From contig OZ176052.1 of assembly GCA_964247055.1 (NCBI GenBank), positions 806,001 through 870,000 on the forward strand: a DNA stretch of 64,000 nt. Direction: 5' to 3'. Below, piece after piece: positions 4,763 to 60,289 of the stretch. The notes beneath the pieces are model-generated. The model worked only from the letters and a program-made list of their open reading frames with translations, was not told the DNA's origin and did no database searches. The position numbers and the translations under genes are program-made. This stretch comes from Paragordius varius. Its lineage: Eukaryota > Animalia > Nematomorpha. Position 1 is the first letter of the stretch; each line of letters opens with the position of its first letter.

Positions 4763-7064
4763 ATGCTTGTGAATTCTGGTGCTACTTTAGGCTCAAACGC
4801 TTTCGCCTATTCCCAACAATATCAGGTAGGTTTTAATTTTTTTAATATTCTAATTTGGTTTTCACAAAATTTAATAAATTTTTCCCGAAATTTATTTGAA
4901 AAAATTTTTATTAATTAAATAAATATATTTTTAAATCCAATTTATTTAGCATCATAACAATGTTTTACCGCAATTGTTTAAAAACACAATGAACCATCAG
5001 CCCAATATCCAAAGTACTGAAAAATCCACTCTAAATTCAATTCTTCAATATGGTGCTGCTTCTGAGTTTCAAAATTCTTTTCACAATACTGATGAGGATA
5101 ATTCAAGTTCATCTTCTTCAGTAACTTCATTTGAGTTACAACCAAACAACTTTAATAATGGCAACAAAGTTAATTTAATGGGGGATATTAGAATGTTAAA
5201 TGAAAACTTTGCCAAAATGTTTTCGGCAAATCTTGAAACTTACAAGCAACATTTAATGAATTCACCGCGAATTAATTACCGTAATAAAGTTTGTTGTACG
5301 CAAGATAATTCTACCACCACTAATAATAAGCCCAAAAACGATAAAGTTACAGATGATTGTTCTTTAAATTTTATTAACCAAAATAATAATGGTATATTAG
5401 TTAATCGTCCCAACAATTTATCCATTAAAGTACAACATCAACAACAGCAAACTAATAATAATTGCCAAACTTTTGAGCAACTTGGTAGCAGTAATGCTAA
5501 TAATGTTGTTTGCAACAATGTTTCTCCATTCTCCTATGACATGATTGGATCACCTTTTGGGGGCAGTGCGTCATTTTCATCATCTTCGTGTGGGAGCGGA
5601 CGAACAGGGGACCGTTCAACTGGTTCCAATTCCTCTCTATCTTTGGAAAATAACCAACAAAGTTGTTTGATGACTCTTGTGAATAATGCTCAATCTATGC
5701 GTCATCAAACTCAACCCGTAATCAGTGGTGGAATGAGCCGTTATAAAACTGAACTTTGCCGACCCTTTGAAGAAAGTGGAGAATGTAAGTATGGTGACAA
5801 ATGTCAATTTGCTCATGGTATGGGGGAGATGCGGAGTTTATCCCGACACCCAAAGTATAAGACTGATTATTGCCGTACGTATCACAGCATTGGGTTTTGT
5901 CCATATGGGGCTCGTTGTCATTTCATACATAATGGGGATGAAGCGACCATGATAAATCCTAACGTCGCCGCAAACAATATTCTGATAAATAATGGTAAAG
6001 CGAATGGACCTTTGGGTGGCAGCCACATGAATAATAAAATGAGATTTGTTGTACCAGGTAACAATGTGAGTAGTACCAATAATAATAATCGTTTACTTGG
6101 CTCTCGTCCATCTCTTCCTATAATTAACAACACGAATAATATGTTGCATAATCCTTTATCTATAATGACTCCTAATAATGGTGCTTTCAACAATAATAAT
6201 ATTAACAATAATGCTTTAAATCGACACGCCTCGTTACCTGTTGCTCTGAAATCCGAGGATATTGAATTTCTTCGCAACACTCTTTTGAGCGCATTGAATA
6301 CTAATTTATCACCTAATAATAATAACACAGAAGCTGATTTTAATAATTCTTCAATGTCTGTTACTAGTCATTTGGCTCAATATCAAACACCTAAAACGAA
6401 TAATTTACTTGCATACAAGCCTGGTGCATCGAAAAAAGAATTTGTCAATTTGGATTGCAATACGGATTCGGGGTTTGAGGATAACTTTAGCGCTATTTTC
6501 ACTTGCTCTAACAACAACACTCTACAACCAAAGCTATCAAATTTAAGCATCGGCAATGACACACCTAATACCAATAATAAAGCTGTTTTAAATTTGCTCA
6601 ATAATTCTCTTCGTGTTGGCGCTGATACTGATCGTCATGATACGGTAATTACTAACTTTGACTCTGCTAAAAATTTAATCAAATCAAAACCAATGAGTCA
6701 CACTCTTTTCTGTGATATTAACCCAAATCATGGTAAACAGCAACAACCAACTAAATTTGCTGACAAATATATGGATGATAAACCAAAAGGTGTTTTTGCT
6801 GATAGTTGTGACGATACAACCGTGTCAACTAAACCTCAATTGTCATCATCATCCAACTTATTATCTTCTGGTAGCAGCTTTAATAATAACAACAAGTGTG
6901 AAGAACAATTGTCGTTATTATCAAACCCACATCATAGCAATAATTTGTCAGACGAAAGCCACATTCTGCCAAACAAAATAATCCAGCAGACGATTGAACA
7001 AACCTCTACAACCGCTCTAAGGCTCCCTATTTTCAAAAGTTTTACACGTAGCGATAAGTCATAA
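4763..7064 (+). CDS. Tis11: Tis11/ZFP36 (tristetraprolin-family) tandem CCCH zinc-finger mRNA-decay factor, about 725 aa
   Basis: join(4763..4825,4950..7064). Exon 1 ([21 protein letters not shown]) is joined in phase 0 across a 124-nt GT-AG intron to the long ORF. Tandem fingers [27 protein letters not shown] and [27 protein letters not shown]-terminal RLPIF CNOT1-binding motif. The short-first-exon, long-second-exon layout matches the family. Confidence 0.95.
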
Positions 7065-16300: not shown

Positions 16301-19300
16301 ATGATTTTTTGCCAGAAATTATAAAAATAAGGTAAGTTCACCAAAAAAACGATAGAATAATTTTTACATTGTTCAATAACTAATACAGTTAAACATTTTA
16401 AAGCAAAACTCAAAAAGAAAATTAAAGAATGCAGAGGGAAAACAATCCTACATATTCTTTCTTTCAGTATACAGTATGAGTAAGTACAAATTGCTAAAAA
16501 GTTATTAATTATTGCCAAATAGGATTTATATACAACAAAGGGGAGTATTATTGGCTCATAGTTATTTTTTCAATTTTTACTATTATTATTAGAATAATTC
16601 TCTTTGCTGCATATGCTATTTGTCAATAATTAATAATTTTCAAGCAAAATATCCTTCTCATTTAGTATAAATTCAATTTTACTTAACAAAAAAGGTCACT
16701 TGTAATAGTCAAAAATTTATTCTTTGAATAAATTTAATTATTGCTGAATTACTATTCCAATATTAATTTTCCTTAGAGAATAATAAATTTATACTCTGCA
16801 TCCAAATTTTTCAAATGAAAAAAACTAACTAACCTCAACTTTAACATTTTCCAATTTTTCAGCATGCTTGTTAATAATGTGTTTGCGAACAAAATCGGGC
16901 CCCTTAAACTTTTTACCACTCAAGGGGCATAACCATTTATCCTTGGATAGTTCTTGTATGTTATCCTTAATAAATTTTTCAACTTCAGTATCATAGTCTC
17001 TGAGACCTAAGACGCGTGCATCCTCCAACGTGATTTGTGCATTATGAAGTGAAATGAAATTGGCTATTTTCTTTTCAAAACTTTTCATCCAATCATAAAC
17101 TGTAAGATAATATGTTAATGAAATAAATAACCAGTTGCAAAGTTATCATACCATTTGGACTTAAAGTTAGTCCTAGAACATTTTAAGTTTGTCCTTAAAC
17201 CTTTCAAGTTGTTCCTTGAATTTTTTAAGAATGTCCGTAAACACTTAAAATTGGTCTTTAAACATTTCAAGTTGGTCCTTGAATTTTTAAATATTTTTAT
17301 AGATATTTTATCGATTTATAGCCCATAATTTTTATTTGCCACATATTATTACTTCTTTTGGTTATCATGTTTTTATTTCTATGCAACATGAACCTATTTA
17401 TTGTAAAAATCTATCTAATAGACACATTCAAAACAACCATCATTCATTAAATACTTTTCATAAAAATATATATTAATTATTAATGTGTAGTATATAAGGA
17501 TTTCTTAATTCTGACAATGCAATGTATATATCCACACCTCTTTTGACAATATATCACAAACATAATGATTCCCCCTTTTGAAGAATGCCATTCTCTATCG
17601 GGTAACTATTAATAATGTGATATCAGAAAGTTTGTTCTGTGGAACTATACAATGAAAACAAAAACTCATAATAAAATTATTAATAAGATTTAAAAGGTTA
17701 TGGTGTCAAAGTCAATTTCTCAAAAACCAAATTAATGTACGATAATCCCACCGCTAAATACCCATGCAGCGTATGTAGAAAAGAAGTTAAATCAAATTCT
17801 GTACGCTGCAATTCTTGTCTTCTATGGGTACACAAAAAATGTAGTAGCCTTAAATCTATAAATGATTACGATAAACACTATAAATGCTGGACATGTTTAA
17901 ATTATAATATTAGTTTAACAACCAACCCGATTCCCAACCCTTTCAATATGGAAACAGTTAGCAGTTTTTGCTACTTAGGCGATATGATATCAGCCGGTGG
18001 AGGAATAGAACATGCAATTAAGCATCGCATATCACAAATGTGGAAAAAATACCATTCGTTAAAATCAATAATAAATACGTCAAACTACAAACTAAATGTG
18101 CCATTTACACTACAGCCATCCGTCCCGTTCTCACATATGCATCCGAATCCTGGCCGATGTCAAAAACAAATGAATCCAAACTCATAAACGCTGAATCCAA
18201 ATTATTGAAAACAATATTATTTGCACACAATCCCTCTAACAATTATACCGAATCCATAAACCCGTACCATATACTCAATCTCAACCCCGTCAACAACGTC
18301 ATCCGAAATCTCCGGTTACAATGGGTTGGCTGGGCATGTTGAGAGACGGCAAGATACTCACATTCTTAAAACTATGAAAAATTACTCGGTTGAACTACCA
18401 GCGAAATCCGGTCGACCCCATACCACATGGCTCAACACAATAACTAAAGACCTCGAATCGCTCAATTTAAATCTAGAATTAGCCAAATCAAGAAAAGAGT
18501 GGAAAAAACGGGTGTACCGTCATTTAATGGCGAATCCCCATACAAATGAATGATGATGATGAATGATGAAGATTATAAACAAAAAGAATACGCCAATTAG
18601 TTTAACAAAAAATAGTGTTTGTTCTTCGATAAATCAGGTGTTTTAATGACCAAACCTCAGACAAAACTAAAAATCCAAGCTAGAGCGTGATAGTAAAATT
18701 GCCACAGCGCGTTAAAGAAAAAATGTTACTTACTCTATGATAGGAGGCCCTAAGATGTGCTGGTGGAATATTGATTTGTAAAATCCGTAATATAATGAAA
18801 ATCGAAAATAAAATAGAAAATTAATTATAAACAAAAATTATAAACGATGTGTGAAACCCTTTCACCGTCAATAGTAATCGCAGACTAGTTTCGTGCTTGT
18901 TAGCACTAATCAGTAAGACACAACTATTTGACTTGACTTGGGGTTTTCACACAATCCGTCATTTACCATTAAAATAATGTATACGCCCACACATATAAAG
19001 TCTGAAAGAAATGTTAATACAAATATATTTTTGCAATTTCTTTGTTTTTTCATAGAATCTATGTGTACACTTTCACATTAATATAATTGTCATCAACTAA
19101 TATTGCCTCAAGTATTCATATAAAACTACATTTTCACCTTATAGCTTTAAGTTAACCTCTATAAAGTATGCATTCTTTAAAAATGAATCATTATGTATGT
19201 GACATGTTATGAAAGGAGGTGTGGATATACATAACACTGTCAGAAGAATTAATTTTAAATTCTTAAAGAAAAATCTTATAAATACAGCGACCGGAAATCC

Positions 19301-22300
19301 TATACACTTTTATTAATATAAGTGTGATTGATATTGTTGCATAATATCCAATAAATATATATTTTATAAAAAAATTAATTAATAAATGAATGATGCTTGT
19401 TTTGAAAGTGTCTAAAATTAGATAAATTTTTACAATAAATAGGTTCATGGTTTATAAGAATAAAATACAGATAATTAAAAAATAGCAATATGTGGCAAAT
19501 AAAAATTATTGGCTAAAAAAAGACCAACTTGAAATGTTCAAGGACCAACTTTAGGTGTTCAAAGACCAACTTAAAATGTTCAAGGATTAACTTAAAGTGT
19601 TCAAAGACCAACTTGAAATGTTTAAGGACACTCTTAAAGTGCAAATGGTGAGTTTCATACTTTTTAGTTACAAAAATAATTATATATGTCGTTGTTTTAA
19701 AGGGATTCCTACTTTTCAATGTCAATATAAAGTGTTAAAAAATCTTCTAAATATAAAATTAAAATTTTTAAACCATGATCTTTTGAGTTATAATAAACAA
19801 AAATTACTTAATGTAATTCTCTGTATATATATATATATATATATAAAATTTTTAATACGGCTTTTTTATTTTAAGTTGTTTTAAAGAGCTTGCGTAAAAA
19901 ACAATAATATATTATCAATTTTAAGACAACAAATTTTTTATGGTTACTTAATTTTTACATATATATGGTTAGAAGCTAACCTTTAATATAAACTTTATAA
20001 ATTAAATTCATAATGCAAAAATTATTATACAAATTAACTTCAAAGACTAAATAACTTATTTTAAAACTAAAAGGGGTTCTATTTAATTTACCCTTAAACA
20101 TTTCAAATTCACTTCTTGAAAACAAATTTTCTATTTTTAAATAATGGAACTTTGTTTAAATTTCACATAATATGAGTGAGACAAAAAATGATAAACTATG
20201 CGATAAAGATATGTTTTAATATTAATAATGAGTTAAAATAGCTCAAAAACATTTCATTTTAGGGTAAATTTGAAATGTTCAGGGTAAATTATTTAAAGTG
20301 TTTAGGGTAAATGGTATATATATTAAAATCGATAATTCCCATATTTTAGCCCCCTCTAAAAAAACAACAATTAAAACCAAAACTTTTGCAGTTAAAAAAA
20401 TGATTACTTTCTCGATTAAGGACTCTATTTTGAGTTATTATTAAAAATGTTCGGGGTAAAAAAATGTAAATGGTCTATATTAAGTTTGATAATTTCCATA
20501 TTCCCCCCCCTTCCCCTAAAAAACCAAAATTTTTAGTTAAAAAAATTGTTACTTTCACGATTAAGGACTCTATTTTGGGTTATTATTTAAAGTGTTTAGG
20601 GTAAAAAAATGTAAATGGTATATATTTAAATCGAAAATTCCCATATTTTAGCCATCTAAAAACCAAAATTTTTGCAGTTAAAAAAAATGGTTACTTTCTC
20701 GATTAAGGACTCTATTTTGAGTTATTATTTAAAATGTTCAGGGTAAATTATTTAAAGTGTTTAGGGTAAATGGTATATATCAATGTCGAAATTTTCATAT
20801 CCCCCCTTTAAAAATTCGCAGTTAAAACCAAAATTTTTGCAGTTAAAAAATGGTTACTTTCTCGATTAAGGACTCTATTCGAAATGTATCCGGATAGATT
20901 TTTAGGGTAAATAGCATATATCAAAATCGAAATTTTCATATCCCCCCTTTAAAAACTTGCAGTTAAAAGCCAAAATTTTTGCAGTTAAAAAATTGGTTAC
21001 TTTCTCGATTAAGGACTCTATTTTGAGTTATTATTTAAAATGTTCAAGGTTTATTTAAAATGTATCGAGATAGATTTAAAATGTTCAGGGTAAAAATATG
21101 TAAATGGTATATATTAAAATTTATAATTTCCATATTTTAGCCTTCAAAAAAATTTTTTGCAGTTAAAATGGTTACTTTCTCGATTAAGGACTCTATTTTG
21201 AGTTAAAGCGCCTCGACAATGCATAATTCCACACTTGTTGGGCATATCATCTTCATTGGGATACTCACTAACGCTGTAATAATCCAGGGAATGGACTACA
21301 CGCAAATACAATATCAGCACATCTAAAACCTATTTAATTCAATTCAATGGAAATTAAAATTTCAACAAAATAAATGTTTTATTGATTTTTTAAACGAAAT
21401 TAACCCTTGAACAATTTACAATTCAAATTCACCCTTGAACAATTCTTAACCCTAAAAATTAGTTATGTATTTTCGGACGGCGAATATAACTCATCATTAA
21501 TATAAAATATATCTTTATGGGGCATAGTTTGTTTTGTTTTGGGCAATATATTATTTAGGTATTATTGGTTTGGCCCAATTATTGGGATTCCATGGATTAA
21601 TTTACCTGTAAATCAAGAATTTCCTTTGCAGGTGAGTCTATACTGGATCTGTCTATGTGTCCAAAATAATGAAGTCTATTTGTCCTGATAAAAGCTGTTA
21701 TTGGTTTTAGTTCATTTATGGTAGAATTTATCATCATATATTTTAGCATTTTATCTTCCGTTTTTTTTTCAATCTCGATTCTAATGTTTTTGTGATTGCC
21801 CATGTTTCGCAGGCGTAGGTAAGGGTAGGGCGGACACCCACTTTATACATTTTGATTTTATTTTTTACGGTTATGTCTTTATGTGTCAATACATATTCCA
21901 AAACAAAATTTTATTTTTTAAAAAACATATATAAATCTAGGTAATTTTTTATATTAAAAAAGAAAACACATAATTTATTTTAGGGTGAAGTTAAATGGTT
22001 TAAGGGTGAATTTGAATTGTGAATGATATATAGTATAAAATATAACTCCGAATGACAAAAATCTTCAAAAATTAAACAGACATATTTTTTTTTAAAAAAT
22101 GTTCGTTTTTCAAATTTTTTAAAAAAAATGTTTGTTTTTCAATTGAATAATATTGATTTCAATTGAATTATTAATAAATGCATTCATTTACTAATTAATA
22201 ATGTTAAAATCACAATTTTTACAGTAAAACACCAAAAAAAACGTACAAGATAAATTAAATATAAAATATTTTTTTAAGTTACACAAAATATGAGATAAAA

Positions 22301-58187: not shown

Positions 58188-58350
58188 GCACTTACCTGGC
58201 GCGAGGGCGAGGCTCGATCAAGAAGGAGCTCCCCTTAGTTTGAGACTTGGCCATTGCACCTCGGTCAAGTTGAAGGCTACGATTGCCCCAAATAGGGGCA
58301 AGCCGAGCGCATAATTTCTGGTTGCTAGACTCTGCGTACGCGCAGAGTCT
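58188..58350 (+). ncRNA. U1: U1 spliceosomal snRNA
   Basis: 5' ACTTACCTGG donor-pairing arm (58190), stem-loop I with loop GATCAAGAAG (U1-70K site), stem-loop II ATTGCAC (U1A site), Sm site AATTTCTG, terminal hairpin GACTCTGCG/CGCAGAGTC; about 163 nt. Confidence 0.96.
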
Positions 58351-60289
58351 TTATATTACGAAAAAATAAATTAGTTTTTTAATTTATGGCTCTGATTTTC
58401 AAGTCTAGTTTAAAAGTTCTGATTAAAATACCGTTAGTAATAGGGTTAGGCTATGAAAAATCGTAAATAATAACCCAGAACTCATATATTTTTTAATTTC
58501 GTGTTAAAATCTTATAAATAAAATTTTAAAGAATTAATAAGATATCCGGTTTCTGAATGATTTAAAGTTTATGTTAAATATAGAAAATAGGTTAAAAATA
58601 ATAAAACAGATGAATGTTACATGATTTGATTGATAAATGTTAAAAAGGACGAACTTGAAGTGTTCAAGGGCAATTTTGATGTGCAAATGGTATTATAATT
58701 ATAATTGTGACCAAGTTAGTTTATATAAATAAACGACTTAAACCTTAAATTTAAAATTATCCTGATTTTGTCAATAAAGTAAAGTAATTAATATTAATGG
58801 TATATTTGACTTTTTATATGATGAGACATTGTTAACATTTGTAATTTAGTTTCTTATATAAATTTAAAATAGGCATTTGTCGATTTATTATGTAATTTAA
58901 ATTTTTACTATACTACTCTGTGTAAAAAGCTGATCAATAATTGTTAAGCGTGTGAATGACAACAATATAAATATAAAAGTAATTTAAATATAATCTCAAA
59001 TATATTCATTTATTTATTTACAAGATATTCCTTCCTTAACCCAAAGTAATAACACCTCTTTTTAAGGTCGTTTTACGGGCGAAATATTTTGTTCATAAAA
59101 GTCTTTTGCACAAAGCTATGCAATAAAATTTAGGGAAATGCCTTGTATAAAGACTACGTTACCACAATTTTCCTCGGATTGTCTGGAAAAGTGAATCTAA
59201 AAAACAAAAAGGTTAACAAAATTTTGTGCATTTAAAACTGGCGTTTTAGTTTGATGCAGCATAATAGCTTTTAATTCAATCATCTCACACATGATAATTA
59301 ATGTGGAATTTTTGTCGACATAAATTTTATTCCATTGTAAAAATTTCAAAAAAATTTGCTTGATGAAAATAAAAATATATAAAATCTGTAAAAAACCTTG
59401 TATTATCTATGTCCATATATAACGTAAAAATACAGAGTTTTCTTATTCAAAAACAATATGCTAAAAAAATTAAATAAGCAAAAAATTTGAAGACTGTTAA
59501 AAAAACCATTTTTTATTAATACCGATTAATATAATAATTAAATTTTTCCGCCACAAAAAACAGTTGCAGTTTCGTTGATTGTTTGTTTAAACCAAAAATA
59601 AAACAACAGTAAAACTTGAAATTACACGGACAAAACGCAAAAATATAAAGACAAATATTTCTTCTAAAAAACAACCCTATTTTTTCAAACCTTTAATGAT
59701 ATTAATGAATTTATTAACAATTTACATATCTAATCTCTCCAAAACAATAAGAAATATTGGAATAAATTAATTTCAAAAAATATGATTGTCTTTTAGAAAA
59801 AAATATTGCCTTGTCCGTATAATTTCAATTTTTACTGTAATATATGCCCCTTTAAAATTCAAAAAAAATTTGTTGCAAATGTATTGCTATTTCCAACGTT
59901 TTTTTATAATTAACCATTTCAAACTTAGGTTCACTAAACGAATGCTACACAAATTTCGAATAAAAAATCATAAATAAAATTACAATATTAGTTAAAATAT
60001 AAATATAAGTTTATAGCGCCCTAATATAAAAATGTGTTAATAAACATTAAACATATTTTTGAATCAAGCCAGATATTTTGGGGGAAAAACATGTATTAAA
60101 TTGTTTTTATTACCAAAGAAGTTTCATAATGTAAGGTTAATTAACATCTAAATTAAAATATAAAAAAAATAGGTAAAAAAAGTTTCCAAGAAAAACATAT
60201 ATTTCGTAAAGCAATCTTATCTTTTATCCACAAAAAATCGGTTTCATTGATTAAATTTTTACGGTAATAACTTAGAATATATCGAAATT

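Follow-up and report, generated by a model that had tools for sequence, protein, structure and literature searches.

A decayed hammerhead insertion in an SRRT intron of Paragordius varius and the Penelope-type retrozyme family to which it belongs

The minimal hammerhead ribozymes of Penelope-like elements have a helix III of 1-2 bp around a small palindrome; two motifs must pair, single motifs showed no cleavage in vitro, and motifs have been found alone, as tandems, or on opposite strands at distances of 100-700 bp (PMC4209133). Animal non-LTR retrozymes are AT-rich repeats of 150-450 bp that carry type I hammerheads but no ORF (Cervera & de la Pena 2020, PMC7229834), and a 2026 preprint argues that they derive from Penelope pseudo-LTRs (Li, Clavereau & Pollet, 10.64898/2026.07.22.740005). 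The insertions of Penelope-like elements are characterized by high 5' truncation, partial tandems as pseudo-LTRs and an adjacent inverted 5'-truncated copy, together with a 30-40-bp tail that is often confined to one end (Craig et al. 2021, PMC8557442).

We detected a hammerhead motif on the minus strand of the window, the whole stretch of 64,000 nucleotides of P. varius DNA that was analysed, within an intron of SRRT (ARS2). The motif belongs to a repeat family, here called family A, which is a Penelope-type retrozyme of a kind already described. Family A is like the motifs of Cervera & de la Pena 2014 (PMC4209133) in being type I, with a canonical core in the majority of copies, a 2-bp palindromic helix III and no evident loop-loop contacts, and in occurring as scattered singles, tandems and opposite-strand pairs. 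It is unlike them in that its motif is carried by a 445-bp unit without an ORF instead of by the pseudo-LTR of a protein-coding element, in that helix I is extended to a hairpin of ~30 bp, and in that the window copy carries U8 and a helix I mismatch. With the animal non-LTR retrozymes (PMC7229834; 10.64898/2026.07.22.740005) it shares monomers, dimers and short tandems, the lack of an LTR, PBS and PPT, and a supposed mobilisation by Penelope-like elements. The published retrozymes mostly have canonical hammerheads with loop 1-loop 2 contacts and longer arrays, and are expressed as unit-length RNA in linear and circular form (PMC7229834); family A is minimal, forms arrays of at most about 3 units and consists predominantly of inverted two-arm insertions.

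The truncation, tandems, inverted copy, one-end tail and variable TSDs of family A resemble those of Penelope-like insertions (PMC8557442), but family A encodes no RT or EN and shares no detectable sequence with the intact elements examined. The intronic hammerheads of amniotes (RECK, CTCL and DTNB; PMC6155905) are likewise type I, located on the sense strand of an intron and of supposed retroelement origin; they are intact, ultraconserved and single-copy with a stable helix III, whereas the window copy is a mutated relic of a multi-copy transposon.

The hammerhead and its insertion in the SRRT intron

Direct reading of the minus strand between 18931 and 18861 gave helix I, CUGAUUA, a 5-bp helix II, GAAA, ACUAGU and GUC in hammerhead order (Table 1). 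The Rfam model HH9 (RF02275, type I hammerhead, clan CL00010) matched the same stretch with 24.9 bits (E = 0.001 when 801 nt are searched, 0.08 for the entire window), which falls below the Rfam gathering score of 52 bits. Intact siblings of family A scored 23.6-29 bits and members of a second hammerhead family, family B, 30-38 bits, all under 52; such sub-threshold scores are expected, because the motifs are minimal and lack both helix III and contacts between loops. No second hammerhead was detected in the window, and the hairpin matched no Rfam family other than the hammerhead.

Table 1. Coordinates of the hammerhead, its insertion and host intron in the window, and of one intact Penelope-like ORF elsewhere in the genome
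Feature	Position	Strand	Basis
Helix I, 5' strand	18919..18914	minus	direct reading
CUGAUUA	18913..18907 (U at position 8 = 18908)	minus	direct reading
Helix II GUGCU/AGCAC, loop AACA	18906..18902 + 18897..18893	minus	direct reading
GAAA	18892..18889	minus	direct reading
Palindrome ACUAGU	18889..18884	minus	direct reading
C17; helix I, 3' strand	18883; 18882..18877	minus	direct reading
Predicted scissile bond, after C17 of GUC	18882..18883	minus	inferred from hammerhead numbering
Hammerhead, type I, minimal Penelope kind, two inactivating changes	18861..18931	minus	Rfam HH9, siblings
109-nt hairpin, long helix I extension with the hammerhead at its tip	18845..18953	minus	RNA fold and siblings
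Whole family A insertion, 197 bp	18970..18774	minus	BLAST against the 445-bp unit and sibling layout
19-nt inverted copy of the element's 3' terminus, a very short second arm bearing the one-sided tail	18952..18970	minus	sibling comparison
AT-rich 3' part, unit about 345-408	18774..18844	minus	unit mapping
SRRT/ARS2 host intron, 4,076 nt, GT-AG	21175..17100	minus	exon matches and splice sites
Intact 787-aa Penelope-like ORF	L073:6346-8709 = G000:C1 about 4914345-4916708	minus	RT motifs and GIY-YIG

The 109-nt stretch folds as a single hairpin with dG -35.5 kcal/mol (z = -4.75), a value equalled by 0 of 200 shuffles. The opposite strand folds nearly as well (z = -3.99), because the hairpin is a long imperfect palindrome, and the hairpin was kept in all of the siblings compared.

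The core of the window copy, CUGAUUA, departs from CUGANGA at G8, while GAAA and GUC are intact; the 2'-OH of G8 is the proposed general acid in hammerhead cleavage (PMC6155905). We found a second defect at 18916 (helix I G2.3), where a G-to-U change leads to a U-C mismatch between 18916 and 18880. Almost all siblings have CUGAUGA, with CGUA where the window copy has CUUA, and both U8 and the U at 18916 are therefore derived G-to-U mutations. No cut would be expected in the window copy at the predicted bond, the position of which corresponds to that in an active sibling.

BLAST against the 445-bp unit of family A aligned unit positions 239-408 with window 18951..18774 at 84% identity, and the adjoining 18952..18970 corresponds, in reverse complement, to the final 19 nt of the siblings of one subfamily (L008). 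This order of an inverted arm abutting a direct arm recurs among the siblings. The direct arm of the window copy ends ~37 nt before the end of the unit and the 5' 238 nt of the unit are missing; the copy is a solo fragment. Neither flank (18570-18773 and 18971-18989) recurs in the genome, and no recognisable TSD was found around the copy.

The exon downstream of the host intron (17099..about 16834) matched Pfam ARS2 with E = 9.4e-31 and the upstream exon, ending at 21176, matched human SRRT structures with E = 1e-17, the exons having been searched individually. The donor GT (21175-21174) and the acceptor AG (17101-17100) preserve the reading frame, and the insertion lies on the sense strand of the intron. 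The G+C content of the sequence is about 25%.

The first-pass annotation of this DNA had already recognised the hammerhead elements in order on the minus strand, assigned them to the minimal type I with palindromic stem III known from Penelope elements and retrozymes, placed them on the sense strand of an SRRT intron and set the predicted cut between 18883 and 18882, and in all of this our results agree with it. The ~105-nt hairpin that it described at 18845-18953 exists, but the element extends beyond it on both sides. It was also right that U8 is disabling, and we add that it is derived; it had overlooked the second G-to-U change in helix I.

Family A, its insertion structures and a second hammerhead family

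The assembly from which the window is taken (110.6 Mb, 44 contigs) was searched for related copies, and 336 candidate siblings were detected, 46 of which were scored (identity 82-92%). A 38-nt core pattern matched the genome 194 times with up to three mismatches, 83 times perfectly, while the reversed-pattern control gave 0 matches. A chance origin of the motif, which we had considered, is ruled out by the existence of this repeat family and by the reversed-pattern control. Family A comprises roughly 200 copies, at least 194 by the core pattern.

The 83 perfect copies carry CUGAUGA...GAAAC..GUC, i.e. the canonical core is that of the family majority. Helices II and III are perfect in 132 copies; among the 100 of these that were listed, 13 have dead cores, with changes including G8A, G12A, G12C and A15.1. 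A second G8U copy was found at C6:8111910; it is young (96% identical to the unit), has different flanks and is of independent origin. The window copy diverges from its nearest siblings by ~8-10% (~92% identity to the nearest) and has private indels and substitutions in the stem.

The 445-bp unit was defined from a tandem array (2.4 copies, 97% matches) and contains no ORF. In unit coordinates the hairpin starts at 239, GUC ends at 302 and the predicted cut falls at 302/303. We mapped 28 siblings onto the unit, and nearly all of them consist either of partial direct tandems or of a direct copy abutted by an inverted 3' fragment; the 5' break points vary from copy to copy and the inverted arms abut directly. 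Of 16 inverted pairs, 13 have one arm that extends to unit position 444/445 and another that ends at 392-435, so that a tail of ~30 nt is present at one end only. The inverted arms are 94-420 bp apart in many copies, the direct partial tandems have 1.3-2.4 units, and further direct pairs are spaced by 444-455 bp. Many siblings are flanked by TSDs of 10-15 bp, the overall range being 7-15 bp.

Family A combines the short, non-coding, AT-rich unit, type I hammerhead and tandem arrangement of the non-LTR retrozymes with the 5' truncation, partial tandems, inverted abutting copy, one-end tail and TSDs of Penelope-type insertions. The helix III of 1-2 bp with a small palindrome was also found, as ACUAGU in family A and ACGCGU in family B. 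The earlier suggestion that the window copy marks a ribozyme-bearing retroelement family is thus borne out by the core matches and the unit, and both kinds of relatives that it had proposed to look for, copies with CUGAUGA and copies in tandem, are present.

One solo copy of family A (L070:406-544, plus strand; G000:C7 about 6699-6837), which is located near a contig end and has a 7-bp TSD, starts at unit position 305, 2-3 nt past the predicted cut. This single case is the trace expected if the 5' end of the template had been made by the ribozyme.

Family B has the same architecture as family A with different helices. Between the two families helices I and II and the palindrome covary: five pairs are compensatory, and the centre of the palindrome changes from U-A to G-C. 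In this comparison 94% of cells are paired, as against 25-46% in slid controls, which supports the hammerhead fold for these putative ribozymes, on the basis of two lineages only. At five loci (L033-L036 and L038) the family B hammerhead lies inside a repeat of more than 2.5 kb with 88-92% identity, which is either a longer non-coding element or a set of segmental copies; the repeat at L035 has no ORF of 90 aa or more.

Penelope-like elements of the genome

The genome contains intact Penelope-like ORFs of 787 aa with RT motifs and GIY-YIG, the copies of which are 95-100% identical and occur in head-to-head pairs. They were recognised from the RT and GIY-YIG motifs in translation and by a genome-wide GIY-YIG scan; Pfam assigned no family to the 787-aa ORF at E <= 0.01. 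One of these elements (L073, Table 1) has a 192-nt pseudo-LTR and is abutted by a 5'-truncated copy in inverted orientation. Its tail carries no detectable canonical hammerhead, which is unusual for canonical endonuclease-bearing Penelope-like elements.

The absence of a Penelope ORF near the hammerhead, as first remarked, is confirmed for the window by a translated search with the Penelope protein. Siblings linked to a Penelope RT/GIY-YIG ORF had also been sought, and none belonging to family A copies was found: of 58 hammerhead loci sampled, none has a Penelope ORF at a distance of up to 1.5 kb, one nested insertion aside, and the sole match in a translated Penelope search of the family A copies is an unrelated, interrupted Penelope copy. 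At this locus (L015/L016; G000:C4 about 5136500-5138700) a family A inverted pair sits inside a decayed Penelope-like coding region. The host element there is of another lineage, with 50-70% protein identity to the L073 type, and is split near residue 700.

Neither Rfam nor the pattern scan detected hammerheads in the intact Penelope loci and tails examined. A degenerate U3/A8-like stretch noticed by eye in a Penelope tail was dropped, as its helix III does not form. We found no autonomous Penelope-like partner sharing the hammerhead or the 3' end of family A: comparison of the 445-bp unit and family B with 16 GIY-YIG loci and four 10-kb Penelope regions gave none, and its only match was a 5'-truncated solo copy in L070 that is unrelated and does not share the 3' end. 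Because no sequence link between family A and the Penelope-like elements was found, mobilisation in trans is what we infer for family A.

Divergent Penelope-like GIY-YIG matches were also detected within 10 kb of contig ends (C7:7794, C28:8476, C3:14411901 and C4:14188756 of G000). They have ~32% identity to the L073 type and contain in-frame TAA stops, and their positions suggest that this lineage is subtelomeric.

Origin of the window copy and its surroundings

We consider it very probable that window 18970..18774 is a dead 197-bp insertion of an ORF-less, hammerhead-bearing Penelope-type retroelement with a 445-bp unit, and that it has decayed neutrally. The steps before its arrival can be proposed from the published relatives, for which dimer self-cleavage, circular RNA and mobilisation by Penelope-like elements are described or supposed. 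Arrays of family A would be transcribed. Helix III consists of 2 bp around the palindrome, and only dimers would therefore be expected to be active: this minimal type I hammerhead would cut after GUC only when two motifs pair via ACUAGU into an extended helix III, as in tandem multimers. ViennaRNA co-folding of two copies returned non-hammerhead alternatives and did not favour the dimeric hammerhead, nearest-neighbour energies being unable to model the core.

The released unit-length RNA would possibly be circularised by tRNA ligase, and would then be reverse-transcribed and inserted by the RT/GIY-YIG protein of intact autonomous Penelope-like elements; since family A encodes no RT or EN, this machinery would have to act in trans. 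Such insertion could yield the 5'-truncated copies, partial tandems, abutting inverted arms, ~30-nt one-end tail and 10-15-bp TSDs. The window copy was probably truncated on arrival and had no partner hammerhead, and neutral mutations, including G8U and the helix I mismatch, would have followed later. In the SRRT pre-mRNA it would form a stable hairpin and be spliced out, uncut, with the intron.

The first-pass annotation had suggested that the copy is disarmed in order to be tolerated in an essential pre-mRNA, i.e. that selection favoured or required the inactivation of the ribozyme, since an active hammerhead on the sense strand would cut the SRRT transcript. The position on the sense strand of the intron and the two inactivating changes are consistent with this proposal, as is the reported depletion of Xenopus non-LTR retrozymes from introns (10.64898/2026.07.22.740005), but several findings make it very unlikely. 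The region of ~52 nt from helix I to helix I has 2 substitutions, no more than the overall divergence of 8-10% predicts, and is, if anything, less altered than the remainder of the copy. With 11-12 essential core positions, the same divergence leads to at least one core hit by chance in about two-thirds of copies. Dead cores are found in listed siblings wherever these are located, and G8U is recurrent, as the copy at C6:8111910 demonstrates. A sibling with a perfect core (L017, C3:8651722-8651759) is present on the sense strand directly upstream of exon 2 of SSBP; this exon begins at about residue 21 of the protein and matches SSBP structures with E = 5e-10. Moreover, a minimal hammerhead on its own lacks a partner for helix III, and single motifs were inactive in vitro (PMC4209133). 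In a variant of the same idea, intact sense copies would cleave host pre-mRNAs by trans pairing and be filtered from highly expressed essential genes such as SRRT, leaving the G8U copy as a survivor, which we regard as similarly improbable.

The insertion structures could suggest instead a MITE or foldback DNA transposon with long terminal inverted repeats, in which the hammerhead-like motif is incidental; many copies do resemble two inverted arms 94-420 bp apart, and the window copy itself sits within a foldback-like structure. Yet the arms vary in length and in their inner break points, their outer ends are unequal with the ~30-nt tail on one arm, direct partial tandems of 1.3-2.4 units exist, TSD length is variable (7-15 bp), and the hammerhead helices covary between two unrelated families, all of which makes a DNA transposon very doubtful. 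Even less credible is that the hairpin, though derived from the element, now serves the SRRT intron as a domesticated functional RNA, for example as a regulatory structure or as a precursor of small RNAs. The strong stability of the hairpin on both strands would fit such a role, but it is common to every family copy and not specific to this locus, the stem has accumulated private indels and substitutions, and Rfam recognised nothing but the hammerhead. Neutral decay of a truncated family A insertion, the reading that we prefer, accounts for the same copy.

The window copy by itself is of little weight, being one dead copy of a transposon family. The presence in this genome of intact Penelope-like elements, and of two or more non-autonomous families with hammerheads, is of modest value: the repeat annotation of one published hairworm genome reported no Penelope elements (10.1101/2023.06.26.546503), and among the papers searched we found none linking hammerheads to the horsehair worm phylum. 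The many copies with clean break points could preserve a record of the way in which inverted and tandem insertions arise in Penelope-type reverse transcription.

The host intron contains further repeats. Two foldback-like inverted arms of about 450 bp each (window 17150-17600 and 19185-19650), 75-87% complementary and partly composed of 21-bp tandem subrepeats, enclose a LINE fragment and the hammerhead copy; related arms occur in a few other places of the genome (C10:2477832-2479268 and C2:6431718-6432869). The LINE-type fragment (17735 to about 18565, plus strand), which is antisense to SRRT, corresponds to the C-terminal portion of an ORF and has a weak PHD/C1-like zinc finger. The final ~80 nt of the fragment recur at 90-100% identity in at least 40 places of the genome, which points to a recently active family. 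Elsewhere in the window, at 58188-58352 on the plus strand, we detected a U1 spliceosomal snRNA gene (Rfam RF00003, 118.7 bits against a gathering score of 69.5).
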